A stretch of 64,000 nucleotides of DNA from Macrostomum lignano. Its lineage: Eukaryota. Shown in pieces: positions 3,383-51,647 of this stretch. The position numbers and the translations under genes were made by a program. The stretch spans positions 124,001 to 188,000 of the forward strand of contig NIVC01000353.1 of assembly GCA_002269645.1 (NCBI GenBank), read 5' to 3'. Under the pieces are notes generated by a model, which was not told the origin of the DNA, did no database searches, and was given only the letters and a program-made list of their open reading frames with translations. Position 1 is the stretch's first letter. Each line of letters opens with the position of its first letter.

Positions 3383-3778
3383 TTACTCACCGAGTCGCTC
3401 ATAGATACTGTTGGACAGGTATCCTCCGCAAGCAATTGAAGCATCTCTTAAGCAACTCTGATCGCACACTCGAGTCCTGCCATCTGCAGTGCCATATCTG
3501 CCGAAAGAATTGCCGCAGAAGCATCTACTACGAAACTGCAATCCGAAGTAAGAAAATCCGGCACAGAAAGTGTTGCAATGCTCAGGGGCTGTACCAAAGG
3601 ACCAAGAGCGTTTTCCATTTAAATCTCTATTTAATAAATAATCAACGTAGCAACCAATATACTTGAAGTTCGAGCTGACTTTATAGGTTAGAAGTTCGCA
3701 AGGTGCCGCAAAGATCAAAATGCTCACCGCTGCTACAGCCAGCATTTGACTAGAGCTATTATGATGACTTAACTGCAT
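3383..3778 (-). CDS. WSC-domain protein, copy 1 (signal peptide-like N-terminus plus one WSC domain); possible small 3' exons
   Basis: MLAVAAVSILIFAAPC hydrophobic leader, then YIGCYVD...RDL...PEHCNTFC...YFGLQFRSRCFCGN...CDQSC...CGG..SNSIY, the 8-Cys WSC pattern. The ORF end coincides with a consensus donor G|GTGAGT at 3391/3390, so the true stop may lie in a later exon. Confidence 0.85.
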   Translation of the reverse strand: MQLSHHNSSSQMLAVAAVSILIFAAPCELLTYKVSSNFKYIGCYVDYLLNRDLNGKRSWSFGTAPEHCNTFCAGFSYFGLQFRSRCFCGNSFGRYGTADGRTRVCDQSCLRDASIACGGYLSNSIYERLGE

Positions 3779-4590
3779 GGTTGAGCATGATATGCGTCTG
3801 AAGGGCGCATACATGTATTTTTACTGGGAAATTTATTTATTCAGAAGATCTATGCAACGACCAATCAGAAAGATTCCTCTCTCTCTACCTTTTATTTGTG
3901 ACACCTCTCCCCCCTTTGCCCCAGCCAATCAGCATTGCTCTCTGGCTAAGCCATGCTGCTGTTTCTGCCGTTGGTTAACTTTTATTTTGGAATCTTAGAC
4001 GTGCCCAGTTCCGGTCCCGATAGCACTAGCTCGGTAAGATACAAACGATAGATTAGATTTTAGCATTAAAGTCCAGCATTTGTGTCAATTCATTGACAAT
4101 TTGTCGTGAGAATTAACTACTTAACTTAACGTCTTAGCGATTTCCCTAAAAGCCACAAATTTATTAGGGCCACAAAGCCCTAATATCCCCATTAGTCTTG
4201 ACATCTTAAAGAATTCTCTCCGTAAGCCTTAATACGTCAGCAATTCCTCACTCCCAAGAGCATTTCAGAAATTACCCCGTGAGCCATCTTAGCAATTCCC
4301 CAATAAAGCTTTTATATGGTTGATATGACGCTACTTTCATACTGGGCATTAGGCTTCTTTCACGTTGGATGTGACGCTTCACTAACTCTTTATTTTTGCG
4401 CGTCTGTCTAAAAAATAAATATTTATTGACAAACTCCAGCCAAGGACAAGCTTCGCCGAGTATGAGGTCCATACTTCAGTCGTCATCGCTCAAGCTTATC
4501 CTCATCCTCACACTATAGAAATGCTATAATTTAGTTCCACCAGTTGCTCACTCAATAAAAGTTGTGCAGGAGGAGTTATCAAGAATATTT

Positions 4591-8871: not shown

Positions 8872-11800
8872 TTAAAGGTAGAACAGCTGGTCGCAGATCT
8901 GCGGATTCGGCTCCTGCCCGAGGCTCTGACCAACCAGGTAAGCCAATCGGTGGGCGTACTGGCAAGGGGCTGGGACTCGAATAGTGCCAGGCCAATTAGC
9001 GTACAGGTGAGTCAGTTTGTAGGTAAAAACTTGAACCGAATCAGCGTTTAATCGGGTTTCGTTTTCGTCAATGATGACATTGTAGTGCGTTGGCGTGACA
9101 GTGCCCTGCGTGGCAAGTTTTTAAGACAGTTTACACAAACTTATTTTACAGAACTAACCTCAGCTAACTTTGCTTAACTAATAGCTAATTTGATAATCAG
9201 AGACAAAATCGCACCTGTTGGGTGAACTGTGACACCAGATAGAAGTCATAATAACCCGGCATGGTTACTGTTGAGTCCACCACGGTACCTGGCAGCGGGT
9301 TGCTCAATTCCCGATTTTGCTGCTGCTGCTGCTGTTGCAGGAAAAACCGCGCGCTGATTCGCTTCTTCACGACGATCACCTTCAGGCCGGGCGGCGGCCG
9401 TCTAGCGGCGCTGTACAGCTCGCGCAGAAATACCGACACCTGCGGTGGTGCGGGTGGGACAGGTGCTGAGACATGTAGCCCAGTGGTCTAGCGAGACTCT
9501 GATGTGCCAGCGGCCCAGGCTCGATTCCAAGTGCAGTCACATTCATTTGGGGCTAATCTGGAATCTCGGCTTGGCTCTGCTCGTGCAATTAACGCCCAGC
9601 TTGAGGGCCAACCCCCAAGACACAGTGAAGTGTACATGCCTAACGATAAATAAAGTTAGGGCCGCTGTACACTCCTGTGTGAGTGTGTGCCGGTGCGTAT
9701 GACTGCGTACGTATCCGCGCGCTTGTTTGACTGCTCAGGGGAGTCGGCGGAATGGGCAGCAATGCCTCTCGCCGGTTGTGTGACAATGTCGACTAAAGTG
9801 CGCACAGGGTGCCCCGTCTTTAATAAAAAAGAGACAGGTGCTGAGACAGGTGCTGCAACACGTGCTGAGACAGACACTATTAGACATGGCACGAATCGCA
9901 CCTGAGCAAACTCGATATCCTTGACCTGCTCCAGCATGGAGTCGCTGACACCGTCTCTGTAGATGACAATGGAGGCGGGTAGGCTGCCGCCATTGCTTAG
10001 CCTGTACCTCTCCAGTGCAGCACTGAAGCCCTGTACCAGACGCTGGTGCAGCTCGGCTCTGCCACGCTGGTGCAACTCGGCTCTGCCATGCTGCATCATT
10101 GCTGCGTAGGAGTAGTACTGCGTCATCAGGGCTGGAGTTGTTGATGGGGCGGCGAGGTGTGCGTCAGAGGTTGAAGTCACTGATCGTTAGCCTACGCTCG
10201 TATCTTTGCTAAAGGTCTACCTATCTTGCAACATCCGCAATTTTCAATTATCCTTAATCTCCCATCCTCACAACATTCCAACATCCTTAATCTTCCAACA
10301 TCCTCGATCTTCAAACATCCATTATCCTCAATCCCCAACATCCTCAATCTTCAAACATCCATTATCCTCAATCCCCAACATCTTCAATCTTTAACATCCT
10401 CATTCTTCCAATGTCATCAATCTTCCAATGTCATCAATCTTCCAATTTCCTCAATCTTCCAATTTCCTCAATCTTCCAATTTCCTCAATCTTCCAATTTC
10501 CTCAATCTTCCAACATCCCTAATCTTCCAACATACATTATCCTCAATCTTCCAATGTCACAAATCTTCCAACATCCTCATTCTTCCAACATCCTTCATCT
10601 TCAAACATCCTCATTCTTCTAACATCCTCAATCTTCCAACATCCTCAATCTTCCAACATCCTTATTCTTCCAACATCCTTCATCTTCAAACATCCTCATT
10701 CTTCTAACATCCTCATTCTTCCAACATCCTCAATCTTCCAACATCCTCAATCTTCCAACATCCTCAATCTTCCAATTTCCTCAATCTTCCAACATCCCTA
10801 ATCTTCCAATATTCCCAATCTTCCCAACGCATCAACCATTGAAACCAGAGTCGCTCACGATTCAGAGAGAAGACAATGCCCAGAACCGACTGGTTATGCC
10901 GTCTGTCATGATAGGAGTCCATGCCGACCACCATGCAACCCTCGTACGGCATGCTCAGGCCCCAGGGTATGCCGCCCAGCTTGCAGCTCATCTGCAGGGC
11001 CACCCTGCTGGCCACCGTAGTCGATCTTTCGTCTGAGCTGCTCACGTTTCTGAGTGGCGAGTGACGGATTGTTGCTATGAGCTCAATAGCAGATTTGGTA
11101 CTCCTGACACTCCTGCCATAGCTACCCCTGACTCTGCTGCCATAGCTACTTTTGACTCTGCTGCCATAGCTACCCCTGACTCTGCTGCCATAGCTACTTT
11201 TGACTCTGCTGCCATAGCTACCCCTGACTCTGCTGCCATATCTACTTTTGACTCTGCTGCCATAGCTACCCCTGACTCTGCTGCCATAGCTACTTTTGAC
11301 TCTGCTGCCATAGCTACCCCTGACTCTGCTGCCATAGCTACTTTTGACTCTGCTGCCATAGCTACCCTGACTCTGCTGCCATAGCTACTTTTGACTCTGC
11401 TGCCATAGCTACCCCTGACTCTGCTGCCATAGCTACTTTTGACTCTGCTGCCATAGCTACCCCTGACTCTGCTGCCATAGCTACTTTTGACTCTGCTGCC
11501 ATAGCTAATTTTGACTCTGCTGCCATAGCTAATTTTGACTCTGCTGCCATAGCTAATTTTGACTCTGCTGCCATAGCTACTTTTGACTCTGCTGCCATAG
11601 CTACTTTTGACTCTGCTGCCATAGCTACTTTTGACTCTGCTGCCATAGCTACTTTTGACTCTGCTGCCATAGCTACTTTTGACTCTGCTGCCATTGCTAC
11701 TTTTGACTTTGCTGCCATAGCCATCCCTGACTCTCCTGCCATAGCCACCCCTGACTCTCCTGCCACAGCTACCCCTGACTCTCCTGCCATAGCTACCCCT

Positions 11801-14800
11801 GACTCTCCTGCCATAGCCACCCCTGACTCTCCTGCCACAGCTACCCCTGACTCTCCTGCCATAGCTACCCCTGACTCTCCTGCCATAGCTACCCCTGACT
11901 CTCCTGCCATAGCCACCCCTGACTCTCCTGCCATAGCTACCCCTGACTCTCCTGCCATAGCCACCCCTGACTCTCCTGCCATAGCTACCCCTGACTCTCC
12001 TGCCATAGCTACCCCTGACTCTCCTGCCATAGCTACCCCTGACTCTCCTGCCATAGCTACCCCTGACTCTCCTGCCATAGCTACCCCTGACTCTCCTGCC
12101 ATAGCCACCCCTGACTCTCCTGCCATAGCTACCCCTGACTCTCCTGCCATAGCTACCCCTGACTCTCCTGCCATAGCCACCCCTGACTCTCCTGCCATAG
12201 CTACCCCTGACTCTTCTTAGGTCTCACAGCTGTTACACAGACCGTATTCACCTGGACAGAAGACACTGGTTAAGCACAGGATTCGTGACGTAGCAGAATC
12301 TCTTAATTGCATTATACCGCTCTGCCTTAGAATTTTGTAGCAGACACCATTTTAATGCCGGGCTGCAGATTAGCCTGAATAGCCTGCACCCAGCGCTGAT
12401 CGCGATCCTGCAGTACCGGCACCATGTCAGGTTTGCCAAATCGCACGCCAAAGTTGGCCCTAAGTTGCACTAAAAGCTGTTCAACACGTTTGGCCAGGCC
12501 CTGTTGGTGTTCGATGAACAGAAACAACCATTTGTCGCAATGCACCGGAGTGTGCATTACCGACTGCCTCAGATTGGCGTCCCAATTTGCCATATCGGTG
12601 GAATACTTTAGCTGGAATGGAATGGAAGGTGTGACTTGCTTGTTTCGAGTCAATTTGAATATTGCAGAATGTGCATGAATTCGCGGAATCGATCCAACTG
12701 GTAATTTGATCGCTGAGTTGCTACTGAGCTGCAGTTTTCTGCCCTAGGGCCAGTGAAAATGAGGATCTGATCCCACTGCACTCACCGACAATCGGTCCAC
12801 CCTCGGAGAGGACATTAAAACCTGCTCAGGAGGCAGCCGCCTGCCGTTGACGTGCACCAACTCCGGTCGAATCTCCACACCGTATCGGGCCGAGCGCTGC
12901 TGCGAGGCTTGATTGCCAGCCATGTCATTCGCGAACTGCATCAGCCGGTTGTACCGAGCCCTCGGCCTCTGCCTGACGATGCTGTTTTTGTCCGTAATCA
13001 ACTGGCGGTCCCCGAGCATCTCGACGGTCAATCCGGTCATGATGCACAATTCCGGCGGTATCAGACTTTTTGGGGCCTGTTGAAATAAAACTGTTAATAT
13101 AAATAAATATTCACAATACGGTGACATGTCCCACAACCGGGGTCCACGAGAATTAACCCGCAGACGAATTGCCCATCCGAGGTTTGACCGCAATGCTTAG
13201 TACGTCTTAATACAGAGACTTACCCGATCAAACCGTTTCGATGGAAACTGTATACTAAATGCTGATTTTCTTGTAGGTTTCCATTTCTATGCGCATAATA
13301 AAGGGGTACGTATCAGATACACCAGTGGGCTATTAATTCATGCGTATGCCATGTCGCTTTGTCCCATACAGGGGTGTCGCCATGGATTTTATGGTGGGGG
13401 ACAAAGCCAAGAGTTCAACATGTACTAAATTTGTACTACATGACTAAATTTTGGCACTTATTTTGGCACCGCAGGCACTCCTTTTAGCGCCGCAGGCACT
13501 CATTTTGGCGCCGAAGGCGCTATATTTTGCCGCCTTAAAGAAAAATTATTGATTACCACAACGCTAAATGCGCCAAAAGCGCCAATACCGTACGCGGGCC
13601 CGCACTCGTACACCCGCTCACACAAACAAATATAGCGCATGACAAAAAACAAGCGTGCAGTGGTTGTACCTGGCCGCGACCTTCCTGACCCCGACGACGC
13701 GGAACTGGCATGAGCATCGGCTGGCTAGCATCCTGGATCTGATATCCGTACCTTGTTCTATAGTACTCGCCAATAGTGATGCTGCGTAGTTCATTCGTAG
13801 CCGGATCTCTGTATTCAAATTCGGTGAAGACATTTGCCTCCCAATCAATATCGTTGATGCGGAATTTACGGTTATTGTTCAAGCGCATCATGACGCTTTG
13901 GCCAAATAATGCGTCATTGAAGTATTGGATCAAATGGTCTTTGTTCACCTGCGCCTGCTCGTACATATAATCCAGAACAGTGTATTGGTGAACCACTTCG
14001 AACAGCAAGTCAACATGCAGCAGAGGGAATTCGGGCTCCTCGGAGGGCACCACGGTGGCATAGAAACCGGGCCACATCTGCAATGGTAAAATGATTGCAG
14101 CTTCCTACAGTTCAAATTGAAATATTCAGTTAGGAAGCCAGATAAAAGTGAAGTAACGTAGTCTGCAATAGATACAATATTTTAGCACTTGATTAGCAAA
14201 TAGCTATCAACGCCCACCCCCCGTTGTGGTGGCAACAAAGAAAGGAATACAAATTTTTGAATAATCTACATTGTTTGTTATTCCATTCTGCGGCCTAGTT
14301 GGCACTGAAAGCTTTCAATTTAATCATAGATACGGAAATCAGGCTTGCGAGACTGAAATGTTTCTGTCTATGGTCGACACTCGCTGGCATAGCGGAGTTC
14401 AATTTAATCCTGGGGGGCATCAATTTGATCATTCTAATCATATAATGTTAGATATCCAGTGCTATAACACAGTTGTTTACTTATCGTTAAGAAACACTGA
14501 AACCAGACCTACACAATAAAAAATAGAAACATTTCAGTCTCGCAAGTCTGATTTCCGTATCTATGATTAAATTGAAAGCTTGCAGTACCAACTAGGCCGC
14601 AAAAAGGAATATTTGTGACGATTGTTTGTTATCTTAAAGAAAATGATGCTTGAAGTAAAAAAGCCTTCTTTTAAGCCAGGACTTGACCCTAACTCTACCC
14701 TCCCTTTGATTCTTGGCCTACCAAAAACATTCCCAATTGACCATTGGCATCTCAGAAACTCGTTCGCAATGAGTCTTGACAACTCAGCAATCCTCTGCTC

Positions 14801-16851
14801 TCAATGTACACTTTGTGCCTTGGGGGTTGGCCCTCATGAGTTGTGAATCACACAACAACACCGAGTCCCATAAACATGAGAATGCTCACCGCCAGACGAG
14901 AATTAGCGAGTGTAATCTCTCTGTCCGGATAAAAGTAGTTTCGCTGCACCTGCTGCATGCCGAGATCCTGCTGCGCACTAGCAATGAGCACATTCAGCAG
15001 GTGCAAATACTCCGGGCTGTTGTGAAGCACCGGGCCAATCTGTACGATGGTCACTTCGCCGTGCCATCGACCAGCTGTCGCTTCGAAATGCACGCCCTCC
15101 GGTGGCGCCTCCAGCGGCTGAGGCGTGTACAGGATGCCACCGTCATAGATAAATGCGTCTGGCAGGCGGCCGGAGTCTTGGAGGACCTGCGACGATTAAA
15201 ACAAAATAATGGAATAATATTAATTTCCTTAGATTTCTTTTGTTAAATTTCAATTAAGAGTGACTCAAAAAGCCACCTCTTGCATATGATGCCATTGATA
15301 TAGGGCGCCCACCAAGGAGATCTAGCGCGCCCACCAAGGAGATCTAGGGCGCCCACCAAGGAGATCTAGGGCGCCCACAAAGGAGATCTAGCGCGCCCTG
15401 TAGGGAGATATAAGGCGCCCACCAAGGAGATCTAGGGCGCTTACCAAGGAGATATAGGGCGCCCACCAAGGAGATCTAGGGCGCCCACAAAAGAGATCTA
15501 GCGCGCCCTGTAGGGAGATATAAGGCGCCCACCAAGGAGATATAAGGCGCCCACCAAAGAGATATAGGGCGCCCGCCCACCAAAGAGATATAGGGCGCCC
15601 GCCCACCAAAGAGATATAGGGCGCCCGCCCACCAAAGAGATATAGGGCGCCCGCCCACCAAGGAGATACAGGGCGCCCACCAAAGAGATATAGGGCGCCC
15701 GCCCACCAAGGAGATATAGGGCGCCCACCAAAGAGATATAAGGCGCCCGCCCACCAAAGAGATATAAGGCGCCCGCCAAGGAGATATAGGGCGCCCGCCC
15801 ACCAAAGAGATATAGGGCGCCCGCCCACCAAAGAGATATAGGGCGCCCGCCCACCAAAGAGATATAAGGCGCCCGCCAAGGAGATATAGGGCGCCCACCA
15901 AGGTGATATAGGGCGCCCCACCAAGGAGATATAAGGCGCCCACCAAAGAGATATAGGGCGGCCGCCCACCAAAGAGATATAGGGCGCCCGCCCACCAAAG
16001 AGATATAGGGCGCCCGCCCACCAAAGAGATATAGGGCGCCCGCCCACCAAAGAGATATAGGGCGCCCGCCCACCAAAGAGATATAGGGCGCCTGCCCACC
16101 AAAGAGATATAGTGCGGCCGCCCACCAAAGAGATATAGGGCGCCCACCAAGAGACAGAAACTGAACTTGAAAGACTGAGCCAGCCTAAGACTAAACATCC
16201 AAATTCGCTATGTAGATTTTTAACGAGTGAATAAACATTTGTGCTACAAGTCTGATAAGTGACGATTGAAAAGTCGTTTTCTTGAGTAATGCTCTGTTCC
16301 AATGGCCAAATATTGTAAGTTAAACAGCCAAGGCTTACTTGTTTATTGAATGATTTAAACTGCCAACACTCACCTGCAGCCGAAGCTGCTTGGACTCGAG
16401 CACCGGTATGAATAACACCTTATTTTGCATTGCCTGGAAATTTGTAGATACGCTCAGGCGAATGTTGTTGCTAATCAGAGCAACCGGTTCACCGCTGACT
16501 CCGCGAGTCAGCTCCACGCCCGGCGGTCGGACGTCGGCGATGCGATAGCGAAGCAGCTTCCTGGACAGGCCGCCGCGCTCGTTGTCGTGGCCACCGAGAC
16601 GGGCGAGCTCCATTCCTTGGGCCAGGCGGTCAACTTCTTCACTGCCACCTTCGGTGCCTTGAACGGCTGGAGCTGCGGCGGCGGCTGCTGCTCCTGGCTG
16701 AGCCTCATCTGCCGGAGGCTGAAGCTGCATAGGCGGTTGCGGCTGCGGCTGTTCGTCTTGCCGAGACACAGGTGGCGCTTGTGTGGGCTGCGCCGCCCTG
16801 CCTCGAGCCCGGCCACGACCGCAAGTGGCTACTGCTGGCTGCTGTTGCTGC

Positions 16852-16908
<57 letters not shown>

Positions 16909-16934
16909 GTTTGTTTTTGCTCTTGTTGTGACAT
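8872..16934 (-). CDS. piwi: PIWI-clade Argonaute, ~930 aa, 8 exons; apparent 2-nt frameshift at ~12345
   Basis: Exons (-): 16934-16374, 15186-14890, 14077-13670, 13076-12786, 12611-12252, 11049-10859, 10131-9902, 9439-9215, 9105-8872; counting these gives nine segments, all bounded by AG/GT and phase-compatible except the internal shift in 12611-12252. Motifs: N-terminal GRGRARGR; IYDGGILY; MWPGFYATV; PAZ ([24 protein letters not shown]); MID Y-K-Q-K (ERYNAIK, NQC, MSCKLGG); PIWI tetrad D (VGMDSYHD), E (GRAEL), D (YRDGVS), H (VPAPCQYAH); terminal LFYL*. Confidence 0.93.
10230..10825. repeat. Degenerate ~17-bp minisatellite (CATCCTCAATCTTCCAA) in a piwi intron
   Basis: Read directly; lies between the predicted exons 11049-10859 and 10131-9902. 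Confidence 0.9.
11098..12214. repeat. 24-bp minisatellite (GCCATAGCTACCCCTGACTCTSCT), ~46 copies, in a piwi intron
   Basis: Read directly; 8-aa periodic ORFs (AMAGESGV). Confidence 0.96.
13369..13535 (+). mobile_element. Truncated MITE of the family at 30208-30987
   Basis: Starts CAGGGGTGTCGCCATGGATTTTATGGTGGGGG and contains GGCGCCGCAGGCACTCATTTT units, both shared with the element at 30208. Confidence 0.7.
14279..14611. mobile_element. Foldback/MITE with 87-bp terminal inverted repeats in a piwi intron
   Basis: Arm 14279-14365 matches the reverse complement of 14525-14611 with 5 mismatches; the spacer is 159 bp; TTTGT flanks both ends. Confidence 0.8.
15300..16150. repeat. GGCGCCC-rich minisatellite (~22-26 bp variants of AGGGCGCCCGCCCACCAAAGAGATAT) in piwi intron 1
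   Basis: Read directly. Confidence 0.93.
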
Positions 16935-17410: not shown

Positions 17411-18165
17411 TTGGAAAGCAAAGCAATGGCTGTCCAACTGCAACTGCCCCCACCTGAGCCATTGGATGTCAACTGTGAACCTCACACACTCGCTTTGCGC
17501 TGGGAAGACTGGTCATCGCAATTCTTGTGCTTCATTCAGGCCGCAAAGAGCTGCCCGAACTGTAGCAAACAGCTGAGCAACACCGAAGACACCATCAAGT
17601 CACTCCACAAGTCATTCAAGGACCACTTCACCAATTGCAACAGTATTGTGTTCTCCAGGTATGAATTCTGAAACTGCAAGCAGCAGCCCGACCAGAGCAT
17701 TGACAAGTGGGCCTGCATGTCCAAGCGGAACTTAAGAGACCGAGTGCACACCCTCGATGATCAAAGGCGGCAGGACCCGGAGAGCTTTCAGAAGTCTACC
17801 AAGCGACGTTGAGGTATTCTGTCTGGCTACAGACAAACTGCCGCTACTAACAATCTCAATCAATGGCAAGCAACTGGAAGCCCTTGTCGACAGTGGGGCC
17901 AACTGCAATGTAATCGACATGACGAGCTTTCAGGAGATCAAGGCTGCTAAAATGCCACTTTTGCTGCCAACAAGGCGGCTTTATCCTCTTGGCTCTTGGT
18001 CGCCCCTGGAAACTGTTGGCCGGGCTAAGCTCATGGTCAGCGTCTGCGGCTCGAAGAACATGGTTGACTTCACTGTGGTGCACAACCCAAGGCGTCACCA
18101 TCGTGGAAAGGGCCATGAGTGAGAAATTCGGGGTACTGCGAGTTGGGCGGAAAAGAATTTTCTTT
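17411..18165 (+). mobile_element. Degenerate Ty3/Gypsy LTR-retrotransposon gag-protease relic
   Basis: Gag-like LPPPEPLD...WEDWSSQF..FIQA and RYEF*NCKQQPDQSIDKW, followed by a retroviral aspartic protease motif INGKQLEALVDSGANCNVI. Stops and frameshifts are present, with no RT or integrase. Confidence 0.72.
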
Positions 18166-18289
18166 AGTTAGTGGAGAGATAGACAGTATATATAGTGAGT
18201 GGAGAGAAGTATGAAAGTATAACATGTAATTTTGATGTATATATATGTATATAAACTGTTTGCATTCAATAATTTAGTTCAAATAAATT

Positions 18290-18332
18290 TCGACCCTGAA
18301 GATGTCCTATTGTCGGACGAAATGCATCGGCA
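18290..18332 (+). ncRNA. Minimal type I hammerhead-ribozyme-like motif (Penelope-like-element style), possibly degenerate
   Basis: CC-CTGAAGA-T-GTCC-TATTGTC-GGAC-GAAA-TGCAT-C-GG: CUGANGA box at 18296-18302, 4-bp stem II, GAAA at 18319-18322, palindromic ATGCAT stem III, UC site at 18327-18328. Only 2 bp of stem I are evident. Confidence 0.45.
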
Positions 18333-19309
18333 ACTCAAATAAATAACTAAAGGATTAATGGTAGTCTTCATTGCACCAGATCCAAATGCAATAATTGATT
18401 TTGGGATAAAAAGGCCCAGAAATTAACTTTTGCTTATCTCCACAGTGCATTTTCCAGGAAATTGACCTCTAAATTTTTATAAACTTTCTATAGCTTGAAT
18501 AAAACCCCCGTTCGTAACTCTACATAGACACAAACCTAAACACAAGTTTGAAATTATAGTCGTATGGGCGCGCGTCTGGTCGTATGGATATTATTAATTA
18601 GGCTCGAGGGCGCAAAGTAAATAGTGCCCAGAAAATGGCATGCTTTATCTCATATAGAGCATGTATATACGAGCGTATGCTCCATAGACAAATGGTTGAA
18701 AATAAAGCCCGCAAATTGATTAACTGCTTGGAATAGCGCCGGATAGCGGGCAATGTAAGGCTCACATCACCATGCTCTATCTTAAAAAGTAGTAAGTTGG
18801 CTCAGGCAAGAAGCCTGTTTGGCCAGTATATTTCTGTGTATTTGAGATATTTTAGCATTAGTTGTTTAATTACGATTAAGTTCAAAAGGTTAAATTTGTT
18901 CAAAAGGTTAAATTTTTACACGAGTTACGATGCGAGTTACGATATTTGTAAAATTATTAAGGTATTTGAAAGAGCGTTTTTTTGTAAAAAGATGTAGTAT
19001 TTTGCAAGCGCGCGATATTTCAAAGCGTGAAAAACGAACATGAACATACTTCGAAAGAACTTTACGCTTAACGAATAACGACGATTTAAATAGGTATTAG
19101 ATAGGAAACTAATTAAATACTAATTAAATGCTGATAAATAATGAATAACGACGATTTAAATAGGTATTAGATGGGAAACTACTTAAATACTAATTAAATG
19201 CTAATTAAATAGGCAGTAAATAGGCTTAAAAAAGACAGTAAATGAATAAACAAATGAAAAGCAGATTTATTACACTGCTGATATGTCTGTTTCAGTTTGC
19301 ATAACTGTT

Positions 19310-19957
19310 TTAGCTATTCATGACTTCATATATTTTAGCTACACCAGTGAGCTCTTTTCTGACTCTTTTTTCATTTGTAGCATATCCTAACTTGTGTACT
19401 TGCTTGTCATTTAAGAGGTACTGACAGAAGTATTTTTTTCTGATCTTTTCAGTTTGTGGACATTCGGTCAAGTAGTGTAGGATATCGGAACCATTTCTCG
19501 CTCCACACAGTCTACATGCTTCATGAGAGAAAATGTTGGGTGTAATTTCGCATTTCAGTTTTAGGAGGGTTGTTAGTAATTTTTTGTTTCTAAAAGTGCA
19601 TGGAAAGTAATCTGAAAGGTCGGGCCTGCAGATTTTTTTGTAGAGATAGGCGTTTTTGTAGAGTTTAATATGTTGCTGATTCTCTAGCTTTTGGCTAAGT
19701 TCTCTTTCTCTGTGTATCTTGAGGTGCTTTTTCACTTGGTATTTCTCGTTATTAAAGCTTTGGGAAAGTTTATCTTCAGTTAGTGCTTTTAAGTCTATAC
19801 TTTCCAGTTTCTTTAGTACATTCGTTTTAAAAAATAAAAAAATAATCCGTGTTGTTGAATTTAAAAACATGCAGTATAAACAGTCTAAGTTAAAACAATA
19901 TGAACAATATATGTAAGCAATTAAAGCTACCAACTTAGTCGTGTTGCTTTTCTGCAA
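19310..19957 (-). mobile_element. AT-rich 3' relic of a non-LTR retrotransposon ORF2 (C-terminal zinc knuckle)
   Basis: CRLCGARNGSDILHYLTECP matches the Cx2Cx8Hx4C knuckle plus (I)RxxY typical of LINE ORF2 C-termini; no RT domain is visible. Confidence 0.55.
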
Positions 19958-20309
19958 AGCATTATAAAATAATGAAGCCTAATTTAGGATAAAGTAAAGA
20001 ATAAGTAGATGCAATAATATGTCATTGGTTATTTTAAAAACTAGGAAATTACACCCTTCCAGGAAGGCGAGGACTGGGCTTCAAACTACTTTCAAAATAG
20101 TGTGCATTTCGTTGAAGCTGAAGCCTTTGTTGCGTCTATTTCCACTGAATTCCATTTGACAACAAAGACTAAACTGTTACAATTAATTGTGATCTTACGT
20201 CGTATCTTCCGTCGTATCTTACGTCGTATCTTACGTCGTATCTTACGTCGTATCTACTATGCTTTTGTCATAATATTTTTAAATAGAAATGGGATTCTGA
20301 CATCAATTT

Positions 20310-20496
20310 CAGTGGCGTAGGGAGGGGGGGATCAGGGGGATGTATCCCCCCCCGAAGAGCCTGACCAAAACTTTTTTGTTGCACTTTTTCGCTATACATG
20401 CTACCATGTGAGCACTTTTACCTTGGTGTATCCCCCCCGTAGGAAATTCACCTTGGTGTATCCCCCCCCCGTAGGAAATTCCTGGCTACGCCCCTG
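20310..20496. mobile_element. hAT-like MITE, 187 bp, exact 8-bp TSD ATCAATTT
   Basis: Ends CAGTGGCGTAG and CTACGCCCCTG; ATCAATTT at 20302-20309 and 20497-20504. Confidence 0.88.
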
Positions 20497-20833
20497 ATCA
20501 ATTTTTGTCATTTTTGACACTTAGCCTTGTCTCTAATTTTAAATTTTTTTTGCAGATGCACATATTTAGAAACTATGTCGTTGGAAAATAACTACCACTA
20601 CTACTAGCTTTTAAATGTTTGCTGGCTTGCCTCTGGCTGGCTGCCTTGCTACAGTGTCTATTTGTCAATGTTTTATGATTTTATTGTTTTATAATTTGTG
20701 ATATATTTACAATATTTCTTGGGCTATAGTGTTAGATATTAGTCTTAGGGCTATATTTTTATAATTTAGTGATAGTAACTAATAGTTTTTATTACAAATG
20801 AATAAGTTATGTAATCATATTGTTGGATAAAAC

Positions 20834-21175
20834 CCATAGTCAGGAAGGTGTCCAGTGTACGCAGGAACTAATTCTGGGCAAAATTAGGCCTGTACGCCAA
20901 TGTACGCCAATATTTTTAGCTTCATTTCGAAAATTACGCTCTACGCTGAAGTCCTTTTTCCATATCATTTTCGTGCAAGTGCAAGCTTGCTTACGTACGC
21001 GGACAGTGGTTATGATGCCGCCAGTAAAATTGGTACGCCGATTTTGTCGTTCTGTTGTGTGTGTATGTAGATACGCAGATATGCCAGTTTTCTGAAGATC
21101 TGTACGCCGAAACAGATTCTAATGGCCAAGTGTACGCGGGAATATTCCTGCGTACGGACACCTTCCTGACTATGG
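20834..21175. mobile_element. MITE, 342 bp, ~30-bp TIRs, exact 8-bp TSD GATAAAAC
   Basis: CCATAGTCAGGAAGGTGTCC..GTACGCAGGAA / TTCCTGCGTACGGACACCTTCCTGACTATGG; GATAAAAC at 20826-20833 and 21176-21183; internal TGTACGCC repeats. Confidence 0.88.
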
Positions 21176-22084
21176 GATAAAACAGAAAGTTTTTGCAGTT
21201 TGTGAAGATAAAACTACAGAATTTCTAGAAGTCATGTGTGCTGTGCAGAGGTATAAAAAGACCATTGACTCATGTAGAGCAAACTGAGTTCAAGTTTCAG
21301 TTACAGGGCTATAGTACTATTATATATATTTTCAAGTAATTTATTTTATAAAAGTCATCAAAAATGGCAAGAACTCTATTTTACCCAATATTTATATATA
21401 AACTGATATTGGCCACATGTCCACACTTAAAAGTATGTTATGTACAACAATACACATATGCTAGAAAATTTTTGACCTTTGCAAAATATTAGGTTTGACA
21501 AAAATAATTTAGTATAAATTAATTAGTATAATATCTCAAATCCGCTCATGTAAATATTTAAAGTAAAATGAAATAGGAAATTTAGAGGAACTTTTATAAT
21601 TCTTTTTGTTTTATTAAGTTTAAGCTATAGTTTTTATATAAAGTATCTTACTAAAACTTGATACATTACAATATAATTAGCTTTTTAAATCATTGCCTAA
21701 TTATATTCATTTACGGTAGATATACTTTCTCTTTCTATGTGTATTTCTATTTTAGAAGTTCTTAGAATTTAAAACTAATATTGTAATATATAGTTAAAAG
21801 TTTGTTATGATAGTAGGATTAAAGGCATTGTTCTTTGATTGTGCTATTTAAAAAAATACGTTTAGATACTAGCAAAGTTATACTAATCTAGCTAGTTAAC
21901 ATTTTAATGTTTTTAAAGTTGCTTCTAACTTCTTTGGTTAATTTTAGTTGCTCCCTCAAATGCCAGTTTTTTGCCTAAGCTTTACACAAACCAATGGCTC
22001 ATTCAATTCCTGATTAACCCAGCCCGAAATCTAACAACTAAAATTACCTTAGAGATTTAATACTCTAAAAGCAACAAACTTCAA

Positions 22085-23264: not shown

Positions 23265-26200
23265 GCCAGTTCAACCAGATCCCGCCGATCCAATGTCTTT
23301 GCATCGTTATATCGCCGACACTCTGGAAGATAGCGAAGATGAAGATAGACAGCTTCAGAAGCAGCAGCAGCAGCAGCAGCATAATGCTGATGAGCCTGGA
23401 GTTGCTAATAACGACTATCCATACTACCAAGTAAGTTTAGCATCGGTTTTGCTGCTCCAGTGATCTACTGTAAGGTTTATGTCTACTGCAGTGGCACTGT
23501 ATGAGTCACTGAAGGTACTGGATATCAATGATTTCATTCAATACCTTACACAGGATCGTTACAACCAGCAGCAGCAACAGTATCCAGACGACCAGCAGCA
23601 GTACCCAGGAAACTATCAGCAGTACCCAGATGATAATCAGCAGTACCCGGAGCATCAACAATACCCAGACGACCAGCAGCAATACCCAGCCGATCCGGAG
23701 CAGCGCTTCTCTGAATTAGTGGAAGCCGAAGCCGAGCAGCCGCCAATTCCGGAGGGTCGCAAAGGCGGCGGCGGCCTACTTGGTCGCCTATTCTCGTCGT
23801 TTCGCAATTCAAAGCGTAAGACTTCGCAGAGGCAGCAACAGCGGCCGCAACAGCCGCAGGGAGTTCCTAGCGACTCCGCTGAGCAACAGCCGGGCCTAGC
23901 TGAGCAGGGCAAGTGGCGCTCAAATCCGAGCATGTTCAATGCTAACGAGAATGCCACGCCTGGTAATACGCTGGATCCTAGATTGCCGCCAGGATCTATG
24001 CAACAGCAGCAGCAGCTTCAGCCGCCGCAACCGCAACAGCAGCGTCTGATGCAGGCTGGTGTTAGAACAGTGCCGGACACTGAGGTTCGCGTCATTCTAC
24101 TGGATGGTGAAGAGATTGGCGTACCGCTGCCTAGAAAAGCCACGGGAGCGGAGCTAATGGCGCGAGTTTGCGAACACATCGACGTTCAAGAGACTGATTA
24201 TTTTGGCTTGACTTATGTTGACGCCAAGGAACGCATGTGGTTTTGGTTGGATAACGAGAAGAAAGTTCTTAAACAGCTTAAACATTGCGATAACAGGCTG
24301 TTGAATTTCCAGGTTTGTGTTGAATTTTCTGCATGAAAAAAAGTGAAAATATTCTTGACTCGCCTACTTATCGCAGTAGTCTAATATGCGCGTATGCATC
24401 CATTTCTTCAAAACTTCAACTCCTTTTGAGGTTCTCTACGTTCGGCAAACGTTGTAAACAACGATTTAAAATCGTGCTTTTGTCGACTGCTGAGGCTCTC
24501 GAGGAGTTTTGTTCTTAGTTTCACACAGGATAAACCATGAATTGTCTTCTTTACGTATGACCCACTATTATAGAGTTTTATCTTTATAATTTAAGGCTTC
24601 AGATCGCAATTAAGTTTCTTCTAACGTTGAGACTATCCGCATTCGACCTCTAAATCACCGAGATGCACGATAAAAACACTCCTGGCAGGCGTAGATGGAT
24701 TCTATTTGGGAGCAAAAATCTTGAAAAATACAAGCTGGTGTACATTTGAGGATTAGGGTATATTTTTGTTATTATTAGTGCTATTGGATTATGAAATTTA
24801 TCATAATTTTTTTACCATTATTAGTAATAAAATTATACTCCTAATCACAGAGTTAAATATTTTACTGTATTATAATAGAATGTTAGTTGAGACATTTTCT
24901 TGCTGACTTGGACTTTGATTCAGGTCGAGAGCCCCAAAGGGGCTTGCTTATCCAGTTTGGATTTTTTTGCTCTAAGCTGACGTATTCGCTTGCATTGTCC
25001 GACTGCTCCCTGGGCTGCCCTTCGCTTACTAAACTTGTTTTCAAATATGGATTAATATGCTGATGTTTATCATAAATAATCAAAATCTATGTCAAAACAA
25101 TTCATTACTCTGACAGGTCAAGTTCTATCCGCCTGAGCCGAACATGCTATTCGCTGATGTGACTCGCTACCAGCTGTGCCTGCAGGTTAGGCAGGACATT
25201 TACACCGGCAAGCTGCCTTGCACCTGGGTTACCCAAGCTCTGTTAGGCTCATTTCAAGTACAGTCTGAACTAGGCGACTACGATCTAGCTGAACACGGCG
25301 AACTTGACAATATCGATTATTTGCAAAATTTCGAATTCGTGCACAATCAAACGTCCGAGTTGGTTCGCAAGATAGCGGAGCTGCACCGCGGTCACAAGGG
25401 CGTCACGCCTGAGGTTGCCGACCTGCGCTATTTGGAAACTGCTCGCCGATTAGAATTCTACGGCGTTGACTTGCATCCGGCTCGCGATCTGGATGACGTT
25501 GACATTACTATTGGCGTCTGCTTTGGCGGCGTCCTGGTGTACAAAGATCGCATGAGAATATCCCGATTCGCTTGGCCGAAAATATTGCGCATCTCCTATA
25601 GGAAGAATCTGTTCTATTTGAAGATTCGCTCCGATCTGTACGACAACGTTGAAGCTGTGGTCGGATTCAAGATGATGAATCACAAGTGAGACTGGTCAAT
25701 AATTGTGTCATAAATTATTAGTTATAAGAATTCAGAATCCCAAGAGCTGTTTGGTATCCCAAGAACTGAGAATTCCTTTAGTTGACTCATTGTTGCTTCT
25801 AGTCTAGACCATGGCGTCCCGCAGAGCCTCTCTATCCGGCCCTCGGTTCTTTTGGAACTTCAAAATAGCAATCTGGCCCGCTCAATGTTTATATCTCTTC
25901 TCAGCCCTCTTCTCTCTAATCTCCTCTCTACTCTCTTCCTATCTCCTCTTCTCTCCTCTCTCCTCTCCTCTCTCTTCTCTCTCCTCTCTTTTCTTTCCTC
26001 TCCTCTCTTCCCTTCTTTCCTCTCTTCGCTTCTCTATCATCTCTCTCCTCTCTTCTCTCCTCTCTTCTCTCCTCTCTTCTCTCCTCTCTTCTCTTCTTTC
26101 CTCTCTTCTCTCCTCTCTTCTCTTCTCTCCTCTCTTCTCTCCTCTCTTCTCTCCTCTCTTCTCTTCTCTCCTCTCTTCTCTCCTCTCTTCTCTCCTCTCT

Positions 26201-28790
26201 TCTCTTCTCTCTCTCCTCTCTTCTCTTCTCTCTTCTCTTCTCTCCTCTCTTCTCTCCTCTCTTCTCTTCTCTCCCCTCTTCTCTCCTCTCTTCTCTTCTC
26301 TCTTCTCTCCCCTCTTCTCTCCTCTCTTCTCTTCTCTCTTCTCTTCTCTCTTCTCTCCTCTCTTCTCTTCTCTCTTCTCTTCTCTCCTCTCTTCTCTCCT
26401 CTCTTCTCTTCTCTCCTCTCTTCTCTCCTCTCTTCTCTCCTCTCTTCTCTCCTCTCTTCTCTCCTCTCTTCTCTCCTCTCTTCTCTCCTCTCTTCTCTCC
26501 TCTCTTCTCTTCTCTCTTCTCTTCTCTCCTCTCTTCTCTTCTCTCTTCTCTTCTCTCCTCTCTTCTCTCTTCTCTTCTCTCCTCTCTTCTCTCCTCTCTT
26601 CTCTTCTCTCCTCTGTTCTCTCCTCTCTTCTCTCCTCTCCTCTCTTCTCTCCTCTCTTCTCTCCTCTCTTCTCTCCTCTCTTCTCTTCTCTCTTCTCTTC
26701 TCTTCTCTCTTCTCTTCTCTCCTCTCTTCTCTCTTCTCTTCTCTTCTCTCTTCTCTTCTCTCCTCTCTTCTCTTCTCTTCTCTCTTCTCTCCTCTCTTCT
26801 CTTCTCTCCTCTCTTCTCTCCTCTCTTCTCTCCTCTCTTCTCTTCTCTCCTCTCTTCTCTCCTCTCTTCTCTTCTCTCTTCTCTTCTCTCCTCTCTTCTC
26901 TTCTCTCTTCTCTTCTCTCCTCTCTTCTCTCCTCTCTTCTCTTCTCTCCTCTCTTCTCTCCTCTCTTCTCTTCTCTCCTCTCTTCTCTCCTCTCTTCTCT
27001 CCTCTCTTCTCTTCTCTCTTCTCTTCTCTCCTCTCTTCTCTTCTCTCTTCTCTTCTCTCCTCTCTTCTCTCCTCTCTTCTCTTCTCTCTTCTCTTCTCTC
27101 CTCTCTTCTCTTCTCTCCTCTCTTCTCTCCTCTCTTCTCTCCTCTCTTCTCTCCTCTCTTCTCTTCTCTCCTCTCTTCTCTCCTCTCTTCTCTCCTCTCC
27201 TCCTCTCCTCTTCTCTTCTCTCTCGTCTCCTCCTCTCCTCCTCATCTCCTCATCTCACTCTCCTCTTTTCTCTCTCCTTTATCTCCTCTCTCTCTTCTCT
27301 CCACTCCTCTCTTCTCCTTTATTCTCTCGCCTCTTTTTTCTCTTATCTCCCTTCTCTCTTCTTCATTCCCTCTCCTCTCTTCCCTCATACGACCTGCAGT
27401 CATTATCTACGTTCTCTATCCGTCCCTTGAGGTAAAAAAGTTTTCCGACTCCTGCTCTAGACACAATATCGTGCGACAAACCGTGAATCGAACCTGTACA
27501 TATCTAAGCTACTTTGGCTCTTAATCTCATGCATTTAAAATATTAAGATTTCCCCTCATTCATTAATTGATAATCCAAGGTGGGCCAAACGTTTGTGGAA
27601 GATCGCCATCGAGAATCACGCATTCTTCCGTCTGAAAGAGGCCCAACTAGAGAAATCGGGCAGTCGCAGTTCGCTAAATTTCATTCGCGGCAATAGTAGC
27701 CACCGATTCTCTGGCCGTACGATGCATCAGTACCGAACTGAGGGCGGCACCCTGCGCCATTCTGGCACATTCGATCGTTCCTTGACTAAACGCATGTCGG
27801 CCAGCCTTCCCAGTCTGAAAGGCTCCCAGTACGGCTCGTTTCATAGTTTAAATCGGCTGCATCCGCGAGATATGCGACCGCAGGCTAATAGCGGCCGGGG
27901 TCGCGGCGGAGTTATCGGCGGTAGTAGTCGGGCTCTCGCTTCAAGCGGCGGCGGTGGCGGCAGCGGTGGCCAGCCAATGATGATGATGGCGCGCACTGGT
28001 AGCGTTAGTATTCTGCCTACTAGCGCGTTTAATAGGCCGTCGGTGAGTCTATATATTGATCTGTGAACTTCGATGTTCTTAGGTTGTGCTACACAAGCCC
28101 TGTAGCAGTGATTTGGTGACAGGCACTGGTAGCGGACCTAGTGGAGTGACAGACGCTAGGATCAGTCTTAGTGGAGTGACAGACGCTAGGAGCAGTCTTA
28201 GTGGAGTGACAGACGCTAGGAGCAGTCTTAGTGGAGTGACAGACGCTAGGAGCAGTCTTAGTGAAGTGACAGTCGCTAGGAGCAGTCTTAGTGGAGTGAC
28301 AGACGCTAGGAGCAGTCTTAGTGGAGTGACAGACGCTAGGAGCAGTCTTAGTGGAGTGACAGACGCTAGGAGCAGTCTTAGTGAAGTGACAGACGCTAGG
28401 AGCGGTCTTAGTGGAGTGACAGTCGCTAGGAGCGGTCTTAGTGGAGCGACAGACGCTAGGAGCGGTCTTAGTGAAGTGACAGACGCTAGGAGCAGTCTTA
28501 GTGGAGTGACAGACGCTAGGAGCAGTCTTAGTGGAGTGACAGACGCTAGGAGCAGTCTTAGTGGAGTGACAGTCGCTAGGAGCGGGAGTGACAGTCGCTA
28601 GGAGCGGGAGTGACAGTCGCTAGGAGCGGGAGTGACAGTCGCTAGGAGCGGGAGTGACAGTCGCTAGGAGCAGTCTTAGTGGAGCGACAGTGATAAATTA
28701 ATAATCAATATCTATAATAGTTATTTTAAATCTAAAATATCTTACTTGCAGAGCCGCGCAACGTCAAACGCAAGCGATGATCTGCTGTAG
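22085..28790 (+). CDS. Band 4.1/EPB41 (coracle-like) FERM plus FERM-adjacent domain protein, ~985 aa
   Basis: Exons (+): 22085-22979, 23201-23430, 23554-24312, 25117-25685, 27580-28042, 28752-28790, all phase-compatible with AG/GT ends. FERM motifs: VRVILLDG, VCEHIDVQETDYFGLTY, VKFYPPEP...TRYQLCLQVRQDI..GKLPC, QSELGDYD, YGVDLHPARD, FAWPKILRISY, KRLWKIAIENHAFFRL; FA motif HRFSGRT. Confidence 0.9.
25895..27400. repeat. ~1.5 kb polypyrimidine/polypurine (CT-rich) tract in FERM intron 4
   Basis: The core (~26040-27220) is almost exclusively C/T, built from CTCT(T/C)-type 5-12 bp units. Confidence 0.96.
28135..28690. repeat. 30-bp minisatellite (AGTGGAGTGACAGACGCTAGGAGCAGTCTT) decaying to 21-bp units
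   Basis: Read directly; gives the open frame SGVTDARSSL repeated. Confidence 0.93.
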
Positions 28791-35500: not shown

Positions 35501-37430
35501 CATGCATCGGGGATTGGGGGATTAGAATCGCAGGAATTATGGGATCATGCATCGGGGATTGGGGGATTAGAATTGCAGGGATTATGGGATCATGTATCGG
35601 GGATTGGGGGGATTAGAATCGCAGGGATTATGGGATCATGCATCGGGGATTGGGGGATTAGAATCGCAGGAATTATGGGATCATGCATCGGGGATTGGGG
35701 GATTAGAATCGCAGGAATTATGGGATCGTGCATCGGGGATGGGGGATTCGAATTGCAGGGATTTGGGATCATGCATCGGGGATGGGGGATTAGAATTACA
35801 GGGATTTGGGATCGTGCATCGGGGATTGGGGGGATTCGAATTACAGGGATTTGGGATCATGCATCGGGGACCTGACCACGATTCCTATTTTACCATCAGG
35901 CTACATCGACGAAGAGGAAGATTCAAATTCGGCTCCGACGCCGGAATCGGCTAGCGACAAGGACAAACCAGTCGATGGTGTAGTTGCCACGGCTGCAGGC
36001 GACTCGAACACAAATAGCAACGGTAGCAGCGGCAATAGCGGCTTGTCCGACTCGCAGCGGCACCAATTAAAGCACCGGGAACTGTTCCTGTCGCGGCAAG
36101 TTGAAACTCTGCCGGCCACTACTATTCGAGGAAAGTGTTCGGTGACGCTGCTGAACGAGACGGAATCGTTAATGTCTTATCTGAATCGGGAGGACGCGTT
36201 CTATTATACGCTAATGTACGACAGCTCGCAGAAGACTCTGCTAGCCGACCGAGGCGAGATCCGGGTTGGCGGGCGCTACCAGGCCGAGGTGCAGCCGCTG
36301 CTGGCCCAGGGCGAGTCAGATGGTCGAGAGGATTCGGCCAGCTTAGAGGAGCTGGTCTGGCGTCCGGACAATGGACTGCAGAGTAGCGATATAGATAGGT
36401 AATGATCAGCTAATAGGGACTGCAGGCAGACGGAAGACTTATCTACTGTTTAGAATTGCCTTTTGATCTTAATCATATAGTATAATCGTGGCTCAGCCTC
36501 AAGAGGTTCGCTTGTTAATTAATCCCAGTTAAGTATAGTTTCTTAATCTTCATTGAGAAGCCGGCCCTTAATCCGCATGAAAAAATTGCCATTTAAATCC
36601 TATTCATAGTAGTATTGTGCAAATTAAAATCGGTTATCTATTAACAAATTAAAAAATGCCGCTTAATACCCATTAAGAGTCGCCACATATCCATTAGGCA
36701 TGGCCCATAATCCATTAGGCATAGCCCATAATCCATTAGGCATGGTCCATAATCCATTAGGCATGGTCCATAATCCATTAGGCATGGTCCATAATACTGC
36801 ATAGAGCGCACTCCCATACTCGCGCCAGATACCTGCTGGTGTCCCGCGCCGTTGGCACGCTGGCCCGCGCCATGGACGCCAGTAGCGCCACTCGCCAACC
36901 TGGCCTTGGCCTGGCAGCCGCCTCCGCCGGTCGCGACTGCACTCAGGCGCACGCCTACAAAACTCTGCACTCGAATGGCTACGATTTAGGCCGAGCATTC
37001 TGCGCTTTGGTTAGCGACGCCGGGCCGTTGCTATGCCGAGACGAGCTCGAGGATTGGTCGGCCGGGGAGAGCAACCTGTTCGAGGAGGCCATGGAAAAGT
37101 ACGGCAAAGATTTTCACGATATTCGACAAGATTTTCTGCCGTGGAAATCGATGAAAGCAATTGTGGAGTATTTCTATATGTGGAAGACTACGGATAGATA
37201 TGTGCAGCAGAAACGGCTGAAGGCTGCGGAGGCTGAGCGGAAGCTGAAGCAGGTTTGTCTACATCAGATCTATTTATAGACAGATCGGTTTAGATTGATC
37301 ATATACAAATATTTGCTTAGAGGCCTGCTGGGCACCCTGGCGCAACGCCTTGATGACCAGCGCTGAGGCAATTCTGGCCATTCCGCTGACTCCTGACTCC
37401 GCTGGCCTCGGTAGAGTAGATGGATAGATT

Positions 37431-37472
<42 letters not shown>

Positions 37473-37561
37473 TAGATAGATTGATTGATTGATAGATAGA
37501 TTGATTGATAGATAGATAGATTGATTGATAGATTGATTGATTGATAGATTGATAGGCAGAC

Positions 37562-37595
<34 letters not shown>

Positions 37596-50474: not shown

Positions 50475-51647
50475 GAGATTGAATAGTCATTATATTTCTT
50501 CATTTGACTGAATGCAGATAGTTTTAATGTTCTTACATAAGAAATTTTAAGTACTTAACGTTATCCTTAATAATTTTTTCTTAGCTGATTAATTGAAGTA
50601 GCTTGTATCATAGATATATTATAATGATGACATTAAGATTGGTAGTAACTGGCACTAAGATTGATCTATATAAAAATGACATTCAATTTTTTTTTGTATC
50701 TCATTTGCTTCCAAACTAATAAGCCTATAAGCTCTAACATTTTCTTTTTTGGCCATATAGAAAATTTCCTGTTTAATCTTACTTGAATTTCATTTAACTT
50801 GTTTTGCATGGAAGTATTATTTTATTTATAGTGGTTCCTAAAGAATTCATACTCCAAAATTCAAATAAGAATGGATAAAGATTATAATAAAAATGCTATT
50901 TTTAATGGGGGGGGGCAATAAAAGGCTGTAAGTACAGCAGATTCAAGGACAGGGGTGCCTTAAATTCACTGGCACCTTTTCCTGCTTGTTGCTAGAGAAT
51001 CATAAAGACTCTTATGACAAATATAAGCTTTAATAACTGTTCAATCCTATATACTAACAATGGTCTGTCTGTGTCTATGTGATCGATTAGAGAAAAAATG
51101 GCTGGACCGATTTTGTTCGAACTTGCACTGTTCGATCAGAAATTTTCCCGTGACTGTACATGTATCGTGGCTAAGAAATTGCTCGATGCTAAAGGCATTA
51201 AATATTCGAAAAACATGCTTTTTTGCAAAGGTCAAGCAGCTCTTTCGACTTGAAATGCATTGTAAGAATGCTAGAGAACAAACTGACTGGTTGAATTCTG
51301 ATTCTGAAATAGATTGCATCATAACTGAATTGTAACTCCGACTTGAATTGAAAATGCAGTGTGGAAGCGTAGCACCAGAATTGCGTAACCATATTATTAA
51401 CTGATACTGACTGACTGAGAAACTGATTATGTCATAACTGCTTCGTGTGATTTACTCTATGCTTGGATTTTCAAGTGTTGAATTATATAAGTGCAAAATT
51501 TAATGTTATCAAAACGATGAGAGCTAGCCTAGAGGTGAACAAACTGAACTGCTAAATGCAGAGACGATGGTTCGAATTTTCATAGAGTATAATTTTTTTA
51601 ATTAAAGCTTTTCAACGTCAGGAAAACTAAAATACTTTTAAAAAAGA

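Follow-up and report, generated by a model that had tools for sequence, protein, structure and literature searches.

A fourth, probably disabled PIWI paralogue in the flatworm Macrostomum lignano

Macrostomum lignano serves as a model species in research on flatworm stem cells, and a full inventory of its PIWI genes, including which copies are intact, bears on the specificity of RNA interference, on antibody design and on the interpretation of knock-downs. Three PIWI proteins have been described in this species, Macpiwi1, Macpiwi2 and Macpiwi3, the latter two being 80% and about 30% identical to the first, and full-length transcripts were reported for these three only (Zhou et al. 2015, PMC4604429). 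Binding of PIWI-interacting RNAs (piRNAs) by Macpiwi1 has been established experimentally, and the protein is needed for transposon silencing and neoblast maintenance; its heterotypic ping-pong partner was not identified in that study, and PIWI function in M. lignano seems partly separable from transposon silencing (PMC4604429). Free-living rhabditophoran flatworms possess a flatworm-specific PIWI group, FLiwi, which is probably fast evolving, has been repeatedly amplified and is probably derived from the PIWIL1 class (Fontenla et al. 2021, PMC8191739). Here we analyze a stretch of 64,000 nucleotides (positions 124,001 to 188,000 of contig NIVC01000353.1, assembly GCA_002269645.1; hereafter the window), which carries a PIWI gene on its minus strand. 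The gene is a sister paralogue of Macpiwi1 and Macpiwi2, its assembled reading frame is broken in the exon that encodes the MID domain, and the explanation that we favor, at a probability of roughly 60%, is a recently disabled lineage-specific paralogue, either a young pseudogene or a null allele.

The window gene runs from an ATG at 16934-16932 to a stop codon at 8874-8872, spanning exactly 8872-16934. Six-frame translation of the minus strand over 8.4-17.1 kb, combined with reading of the junctions, resolved nine exons separated by eight GT..AG introns of 109-1202 nt. Translation across the frameshift yields a conceptual protein of ~931 residues, in which Pfam recognizes PAZ (PF02170; 68 bits against a cut-off of 28.8; residues 321-453) and the RNase H-like Piwi domain (PF02171; 247.9 bits; model positions 2-300 of 302); the former also aligns with the PAZ structures of PIWIL1 and PIWIL2. 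The top match among solved structures is PIWIL1 (9s0z_B; 448 bits, E = 2.9e-133), collinear from residue 40 to the last residue, followed by EfPiwi, Siwi, MILI and Drosophila Piwi. PIWI-clade structures score 329-448 bits and those of human AGO1-4 only 104-122 bits, and the nearest database relatives are all PIWI, Aub or Siwi proteins. By these comparisons the gene is a PIWI-clade Argonaute gene, of the PIWI rather than the AGO subfamily. An earlier note on this DNA, which had proposed a PIWI gene collinear with canonical PIWIs, was accurate about both its ends and its domain order.

The nearest database proteins are three M. lignano gene models in UniProt: A0A1I8GTA4 (P0001), 99.8% identical to the window protein over 561 in-frame residues, A0A1I8J3X4 (P0002), 97.9% identical, and A0A1I8JI51 (P0290), 97.5% identical. 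The protein search was run with the MID-PIWI part and with the glutamine run masked. An exhaustive HMMER search with P0001 as the query against 1.84 billion representatives returned one outstanding relative at 519 bits, the next following at 281 bits, and the cluster of the 519-bit relative contains Macpiwi1 (CAQ03958.1/B9ZU52; AM942740) and its homeologues. A neighbor-joining tree of 134 full-length PIWIs (731 trimmed columns, Kimura distances, 100 bootstraps), a distance-based analysis, grouped the window gene with Macpiwi1 in 99 of 100 bootstraps.

That the gene is simply an ordinary orthologue or an allele of a described Macpiwi has next to no chance of being correct. The window gene and Macpiwi1/2 come from one species and have some motifs in common, but the window protein is only 44% identical to Macpiwi1 over 868 residues, whereas the homeologues of Macpiwi1 are 94-99.7% identical to it and Macpiwi2 was reported to be 80% identical. 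Moreover, the best sites for the published Macpiwi1/2 primers in the window mismatch at 3-5 of 20 or more positions. Macpiwi3 (ALD16252) falls into a separate cluster, P0232, and differs in its motifs, as the supplementary alignment of Zhou et al. 2015 makes evident. The primer, identity and cluster comparisons already refute identity with any described Macpiwi; the 44% identity and the primer mismatches exclude membership in Macpiwi1/2 and leave the window gene as their sister paralogue. No named fourth Macpiwi was found in a literature search, and the accessions concerned are not listed in the supplements of Fontenla 2017. The gene is therefore best described as a fourth, so far unnamed, PIWI paralogue of M. 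lignano, sister to Macpiwi1/Macpiwi2, and the lineage-specific paralogue that the earlier note had suspected is borne out.

The same note had called the Argonaute catalytically complete, and the residues on which that description depends, like all the motifs it quoted, are present in the conceptual translation. The 5'-phosphate pocket residues Y619, K623, Q635 and K663 align with those of PIWIL1 and Macpiwi1, the DEDH tetrad consists of D684, E730 (with a duplicate copy, E722), D763 and H907, and the terminal LFYL aligns with its counterparts in solved PIWI structures. The sequence GRGRARGR at residues 39-46 has an equivalent in Macpiwi1; an N-terminal RG motif is the usual site of symmetric arginine dimethylation and Tudor docking. 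With pocket, catalytic and RG motifs all canonical, the sequence lends no support to the proposal that the protein uses a different guide class or target.

The open frame through MID and PIWI is nevertheless interrupted in the assembled gene. The exon lengths total 2797 nt (3n+1), and the frame homologous to PIWIs changes inside the 360-nt MID exon, on the minus strand at 12341-12356 (ATTAAAATGGTGTCTG), the change being marked by ATTAAAATGGTGTCTGCTA (12356-12338). The upstream frame ends at a TAA at 12329-12327, before the 5'-phosphate pocket, all four residues of which lie downstream of the frameshift, and before the whole PIWI domain; translation would stop after about residue 610. An independent sign of the frame switch comes from tblastn with Macpiwi1, in which one high-scoring segment pair in frame -3 ends at 12345 and the next, in frame -1, covers 12424-12239. 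Since the two segments overlap on the genome, no intron is possible between them. The earlier note overlooked this frameshift, because of which neither the MID pocket nor the PIWI domain can be encoded by the copy as assembled, and catalytic completeness holds only for a conceptual translation that bypasses it.

Comparison with the paralogue favors a gap of 5 nt. A Macpiwi1 homeologue reads CTG GTG TTC TGC CTG CTG (L V F C L L) where the window gene reads ATG GTG T CTG CTA, 5 nt shorter, and only a 5-nt gap restores the residue count of the beta-strand (V-F-C-L-L) of Macpiwi1 and PIWIL1. Errors in long-read assemblies are usually single-base homopolymer indels, and a 5-bp gap is not of that type. 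It is possible, though clearly less probable than a real lesion, that the gene is intact and functional and that the frameshift stems from a mistake in the assembly or its consensus or occurs in one haplotype only, in which case the product could be a slicer-competent fourth Macpiwi of ~930 amino acids (aa), loaded with piRNAs and possibly in ping-pong with Macpiwi1, whose partner Zhou et al. 2015 did not identify. Runs such as the A4 and the GTGT contained in the site are places where small indels may form, and apart from this one site everything is intact: the nine exons, the splice sites, Y-K-Q-K, DEDH, the RG motif and LFYL. A 1-nt homopolymer error, however, would leave the beta-strand two residues short, and the neighboring genes are without frame errors; the adjacent protein 4.1 gene, taken as a control, has no frame breaks in ~1.9 kb of exons.

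The three gene models, which are independent, also speak against an intact gene. P0001, P0002 and P0290 all jump from exon 4 to exon 6 and omit the MID exon, using poorer splice sites and keeping the frame. Such exon-skipping models would be the expected outcome if the other copies shared the frameshift and had accumulated further lesions. In addition, exon 4 contains out-of-frame stretches in P0002 and P0290, as does exon 1 in P0290, which looks like a decaying gene family. Exact-sequence look-ups with P0001, frameshift-spanning, exon-1, WSC and 22-kb open reading frame (ORF) sequences found no further genomic copy, and a protein search with the neighboring genes yielded UniRef entries only, none of them tied to a contig. 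No full-length protein or transcript of the window gene is present in the databases searched, a weak point against an intact gene, as transcript coverage of M. lignano is poor there and transcript-derived entries for Macpiwi1 are absent too.

Rescue of the frame at the RNA level, by a cryptic intron, by skipping of the MID exon or by +1 slippage on AAA-A, is very improbable. A 64-nt span (TGG/GTGCAG...CTAAG/GCA, slashes marking the junctions) or a 22-nt GT..AG span would restore the frame, short introns do occur in M. lignano (those of Macpiwi1 are ~75 nt) and AAA-A permits re-pairing of tRNA-Lys in the +1 frame. However, a third of random GT..AG pairs would restore a frame, the GTGCAG donor and the A-rich acceptor are weak, and either cryptic splice would delete the central beta-strand within a loss of 8-22 conserved MID residues. 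If the MID exon were skipped, pocket residues Y, K and Q would be lost, and AAA-A is followed by neither a stimulatory element nor a slow codon. The 22-nt and 64-nt candidates and the slippage site were judged to be chance occurrences. In any PIWI variant produced by such rescue the MID domain would be damaged or absent, and the variant might serve in regulation or act as a dominant negative.

Several observations weigh against a disabled gene. The lesion is a single one in 2.8 kb, 16 of 16 splice sites are canonical, there are otherwise no in-frame stops, and all catalytic and pocket residues downstream of the break are intact. Inactivation would need to be very recent, and one assembly error would look alike. 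The frameshift in the other copies is inferred from gene models rather than from DNA, and these models derive from an early PacBio-based assembly, possibly with indel errors of its own. Furthermore, the putative 5-bp deletion is read against a paralogue of no more than 44% identity. A real lesion is still favored, because of the 5-nt nature of the gap, the exon-skipping models, the out-of-frame stretches in two of the copies and the restriction of reported full-length transcripts to Macpiwi1-3. We infer a biological origin of the frameshift, as opposed to a fault of the assembly, its presence in the remaining genomic copies and a lack of productive expression of the gene.

The history that we propose for this disabled paralogue would begin with a DNA-level duplication inside FLiwi, the PIWIL1/Aub-like lineage of flatworms. 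The gene must then have encoded a canonical piRNA-guided slicer during most of its existence; past selection of this kind is clear, because the motifs are intact, the splice sites are canonical and no stops occur in 2.8 kb. A small deletion in the MID exon, best read as 5 bp relative to the paralogue, would then have shifted the frame and introduced a stop before the pocket and the PIWI domain, and the function of the disabled copy may be covered by Macpiwi1/2. The locus thereby adds one unnamed, probably dead, PIWI paralogue to the M. lignano inventory. If intact, it would be a candidate for the missing partner of Macpiwi1 and a natural variant with a lengthened glutamate-finger loop. An unlikely elaboration is that the frameshift is artefactual, or confined to some copies, and that a functional fourth Macpiwi slicer, with changes in PAZ and a duplication of 8 residues in its glutamate-finger loop, acts in neoblasts or germline as the ping-pong partner of Macpiwi1 or as a binder of distinct small RNAs.

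The lengthened loop stems from a 24-nt in-frame tandem duplication (10040-10087, minus strand), the two copies of which differ by one synonymous change. It doubles GRAELHQR, so that the glutamate finger occurs twice (E722 and E730) and the loop is 8 residues longer than those of Macpiwi1 and PIWIL1. The duplication is not new, because it is also present in P0001, P0002 and P0290, that is, in all four known copies. The protein is further distinguished by a Q24 tract that follows the initial MSQQ and by a Q7 insertion that precedes NPLPGTVVD.

The window gene also differs from Macpiwi1 in its rate of change. Its terminal branch in the neighbor-joining tree is 0.51, compared with 0.35 for Macpiwi1 (~1.45-fold longer), and the next sequence outward is a transcript from ENA that has insertions resembling those of flatworms. 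In Tajima relative-rate tests, comparisons to eight outgroups gave 63-89 unique changes in the window gene versus 42-64 in Macpiwi1, with p<0.05 for six of the eight outgroups and no difference for two. Identity to outgroup PIWIs is 32-36% for the window gene and 34-40% for Macpiwi1. At the 61 columns that are >=90% conserved among 131 PIWIs, the window gene deviates 8 times, Macpiwi1 5 times and the median PIWI twice, and four of the eight deviations fall at columns where Macpiwi1 deviates too. Because of the longer branch, the Tajima excess, the lower outgroup identity and the more numerous deviations at conserved columns, the window gene is the one that has diverged further within a flatworm lineage that is itself divergent. 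Its placement in FLiwi likewise appears warranted, resting on the sister relation to Macpiwi1 in our own tree, which was built from another sequence set.

These figures temper the claims of high divergence and fast evolution made in the earlier note. The former is overstated, given the deviation counts at conserved columns, and the latter is modestly true for the gene and mostly a trait of the flatworm clade. Of the four motifs listed there as replacing normally invariant positions, three (VGMD.YHD, YRDGV.DS and LY.NWPG) occur wholly or partly in Macpiwi1 too, itself a canonical PIWI whose piRNA binding has been validated by experiment. An ordinary orthologue on short branches was considered by phylogeny: the gene is not an orthologue, and its branch is only ~1.45 times that of Macpiwi1. 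Most of the oddity of the window gene belongs to the whole flatworm clade and is no sign of a new mechanism.

All nine exons lie on the minus strand. Exon 1 (16374-16934) holds the ATG, MSQQ, the Q24 run, GRGRARGR from 16820 and the start of the N domain, including, from 16433, the N-domain motif singled out in the earlier note, and ends at a CAG/GTGAGT donor; its N-terminus matches that of Macpiwi1. Exon 2 (14890-15186) encodes the N domain and linker 1 (VLQDSG...ANSRLA) and is 47.5% identical to Macpiwi1 by tblastn. Exon 3 (13670-14077) encodes MWPGF... and the PAZ domain, and the position of the preceding intron is common with one of the two Macpiwi1 introns. Exon 4 (12786-13076) comprises the end of PAZ and linker 2 (...RVDRLS) and has a GTGAGT donor, with a weaker alternative donor at 12801. 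Exon 5 (12252-12611), the 360-nt MID exon, contains the frameshift and then Y619, K623 and Q635; its best candidate acceptor is CCATTCCAG at 12612. The candidates for the junction of exons 4 and 5 were donors at 12801 and 12786 and acceptors at 12743, 12728, 12638 and 12611, and the combination of 12786 with 12611, picked by splice-site strength and by alignment with Macpiwi1 and PIWIL1, is a best guess rather than proven. Exon 6 (10859-11049) carries K663 (SCKLGG) and the first catalytic Asp, D684 (VGMDSYHD; codon 10919-10917), exon 7 (9902-10131) the glutamate-finger region and the second catalytic Asp, D763, and exon 8 (9215-9439) the Q7 insertion and NPLPGTVVD. Exon 9 (8872-9105), 74% identical to Macpiwi1 by tblastn, contains a motif from 9006, H907 (codon 8952-8950), the terminal LFYL and the stop.

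A processed (retro)pseudogene is ruled out by the eight GT..AG introns, one of which has a position common with Macpiwi1. If the window gene is a pseudogene, it is an unprocessed duplicate and not a retrocopy, because it has eight introns and only one of them (before WPGF) is positioned as in Macpiwi1. Intron positions do not match those of an oyster PIWI gene, except for one approximate coincidence near intron 4. A Macpiwi1 homeologue (NIVC01000131.1, 3001-5808 of the retrieved locus) packs 885 codons into 2.8 kb with two introns of ~75 nt, a very compact gene compared with the 8 kb and eight introns of its sister in the window, which suggests that introns were either lost on a large scale in the line of Macpiwi1 or gained in that of the window gene. 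Minisatellites make up most of three introns of the window gene: a 26-nt unit in intron 1 (15297-16154), a 24-nt unit that fills intron 5 with ~46 copies (11099-12214) and a 17-nt unit in intron 6 (10223-10824), with 35-46 copies in each. Comparable arrays fill introns of neighboring genes, e.g., at 25894-27386.

On the upstream side, ~800 bp from the PIWI start codon, lies a fragment of a retroviral-type aspartyl protease (17757-18122, plus strand; Pfam RVP, E 2e-5), followed at 18000-22000 by an AT-rich stretch (GC 0.34) with a 215-aa ORF (19310-19957, minus strand) that has no Pfam match; both are probably retroelement debris. Farther along, a protein 4.1/FERM gene (23293-28045, plus strand) is 96% identical to M. 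lignano A0A1I8GUV2 and 62% identical to Opisthorchis protein 4.1, with intact exon frames, and an MTA-like chromatin gene (35806-39415, plus strand) carries BAH, ELM2, SANT/Myb, GATA zinc finger and MTA_R1 domains over several exons. An ORF with TPR repeats is found at 48506-49006 (minus strand), and an AT-rich region contains a 6.9-kb satellite array (51645-58584) with ~305 copies of a 23-nt unit, AGAAGCGTCATGTAAAAAATCAT, at 91% match. Downstream of the PIWI gene is a small ORF with a WSC carbohydrate-binding domain (3383-3814, minus strand). Scans of the window for Rfam families and for tRNAs were both negative.

Among known systems, Macpiwi1 is the most similar to the window gene: it comes from the same species and clade, is its nearest relative at 519 bits, and has the same domain order and a common N-terminal motif. 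Macpiwi1 and Macpiwi2 have VGMD(S/T)YHD, G.DSMLE.VK, ELH(N/Q)RL and PQICD.LF.L in common with it, as well as an insertion of 2-3 residues after I(I/E)D, and Macpiwi1 also has LY.NWPG and the one intron position before WPGF. Unlike Macpiwi1, to which it is 44% identical, the window gene has the ~1.45-fold longer branch, the Q24 tract and the Q7 insertion, eight introns, several with minisatellites, instead of two of ~75 nt, and both the 8-residue glutamate-finger duplication and the MID frameshift; it is, in addition, known from sequence alone. The published description of the FLiwi clade fits the window gene together with Macpiwi1.

PIWIL1/MIWI, Siwi and EfPiwi (9s0z, 5guh and 7kx7) resemble the window protein in the collinear order of N, PAZ, MID and PIWI, in the alignment of Y-K-Q-K and DEDH and in the C-terminal L(F/Y)YL. 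They differ in that the window protein is 32-36% identical to them on conserved columns, has LYQYHxDFxP replaced, carries T350M, Y353N and Y358F in PAZ and has the 8-residue glutamate-finger insertion and the frameshift. Macpiwi3 (ALD16252.1; KR132204), of the PIWIL2/Ago3 class, is likewise a PIWI-clade protein of the same species with a DDH triad, but it carries FVFRDGVSDKQIGEVQQQEVKAIY where the window gene has a different motif, is ~32% identical on conserved columns and belongs to a separate cluster.

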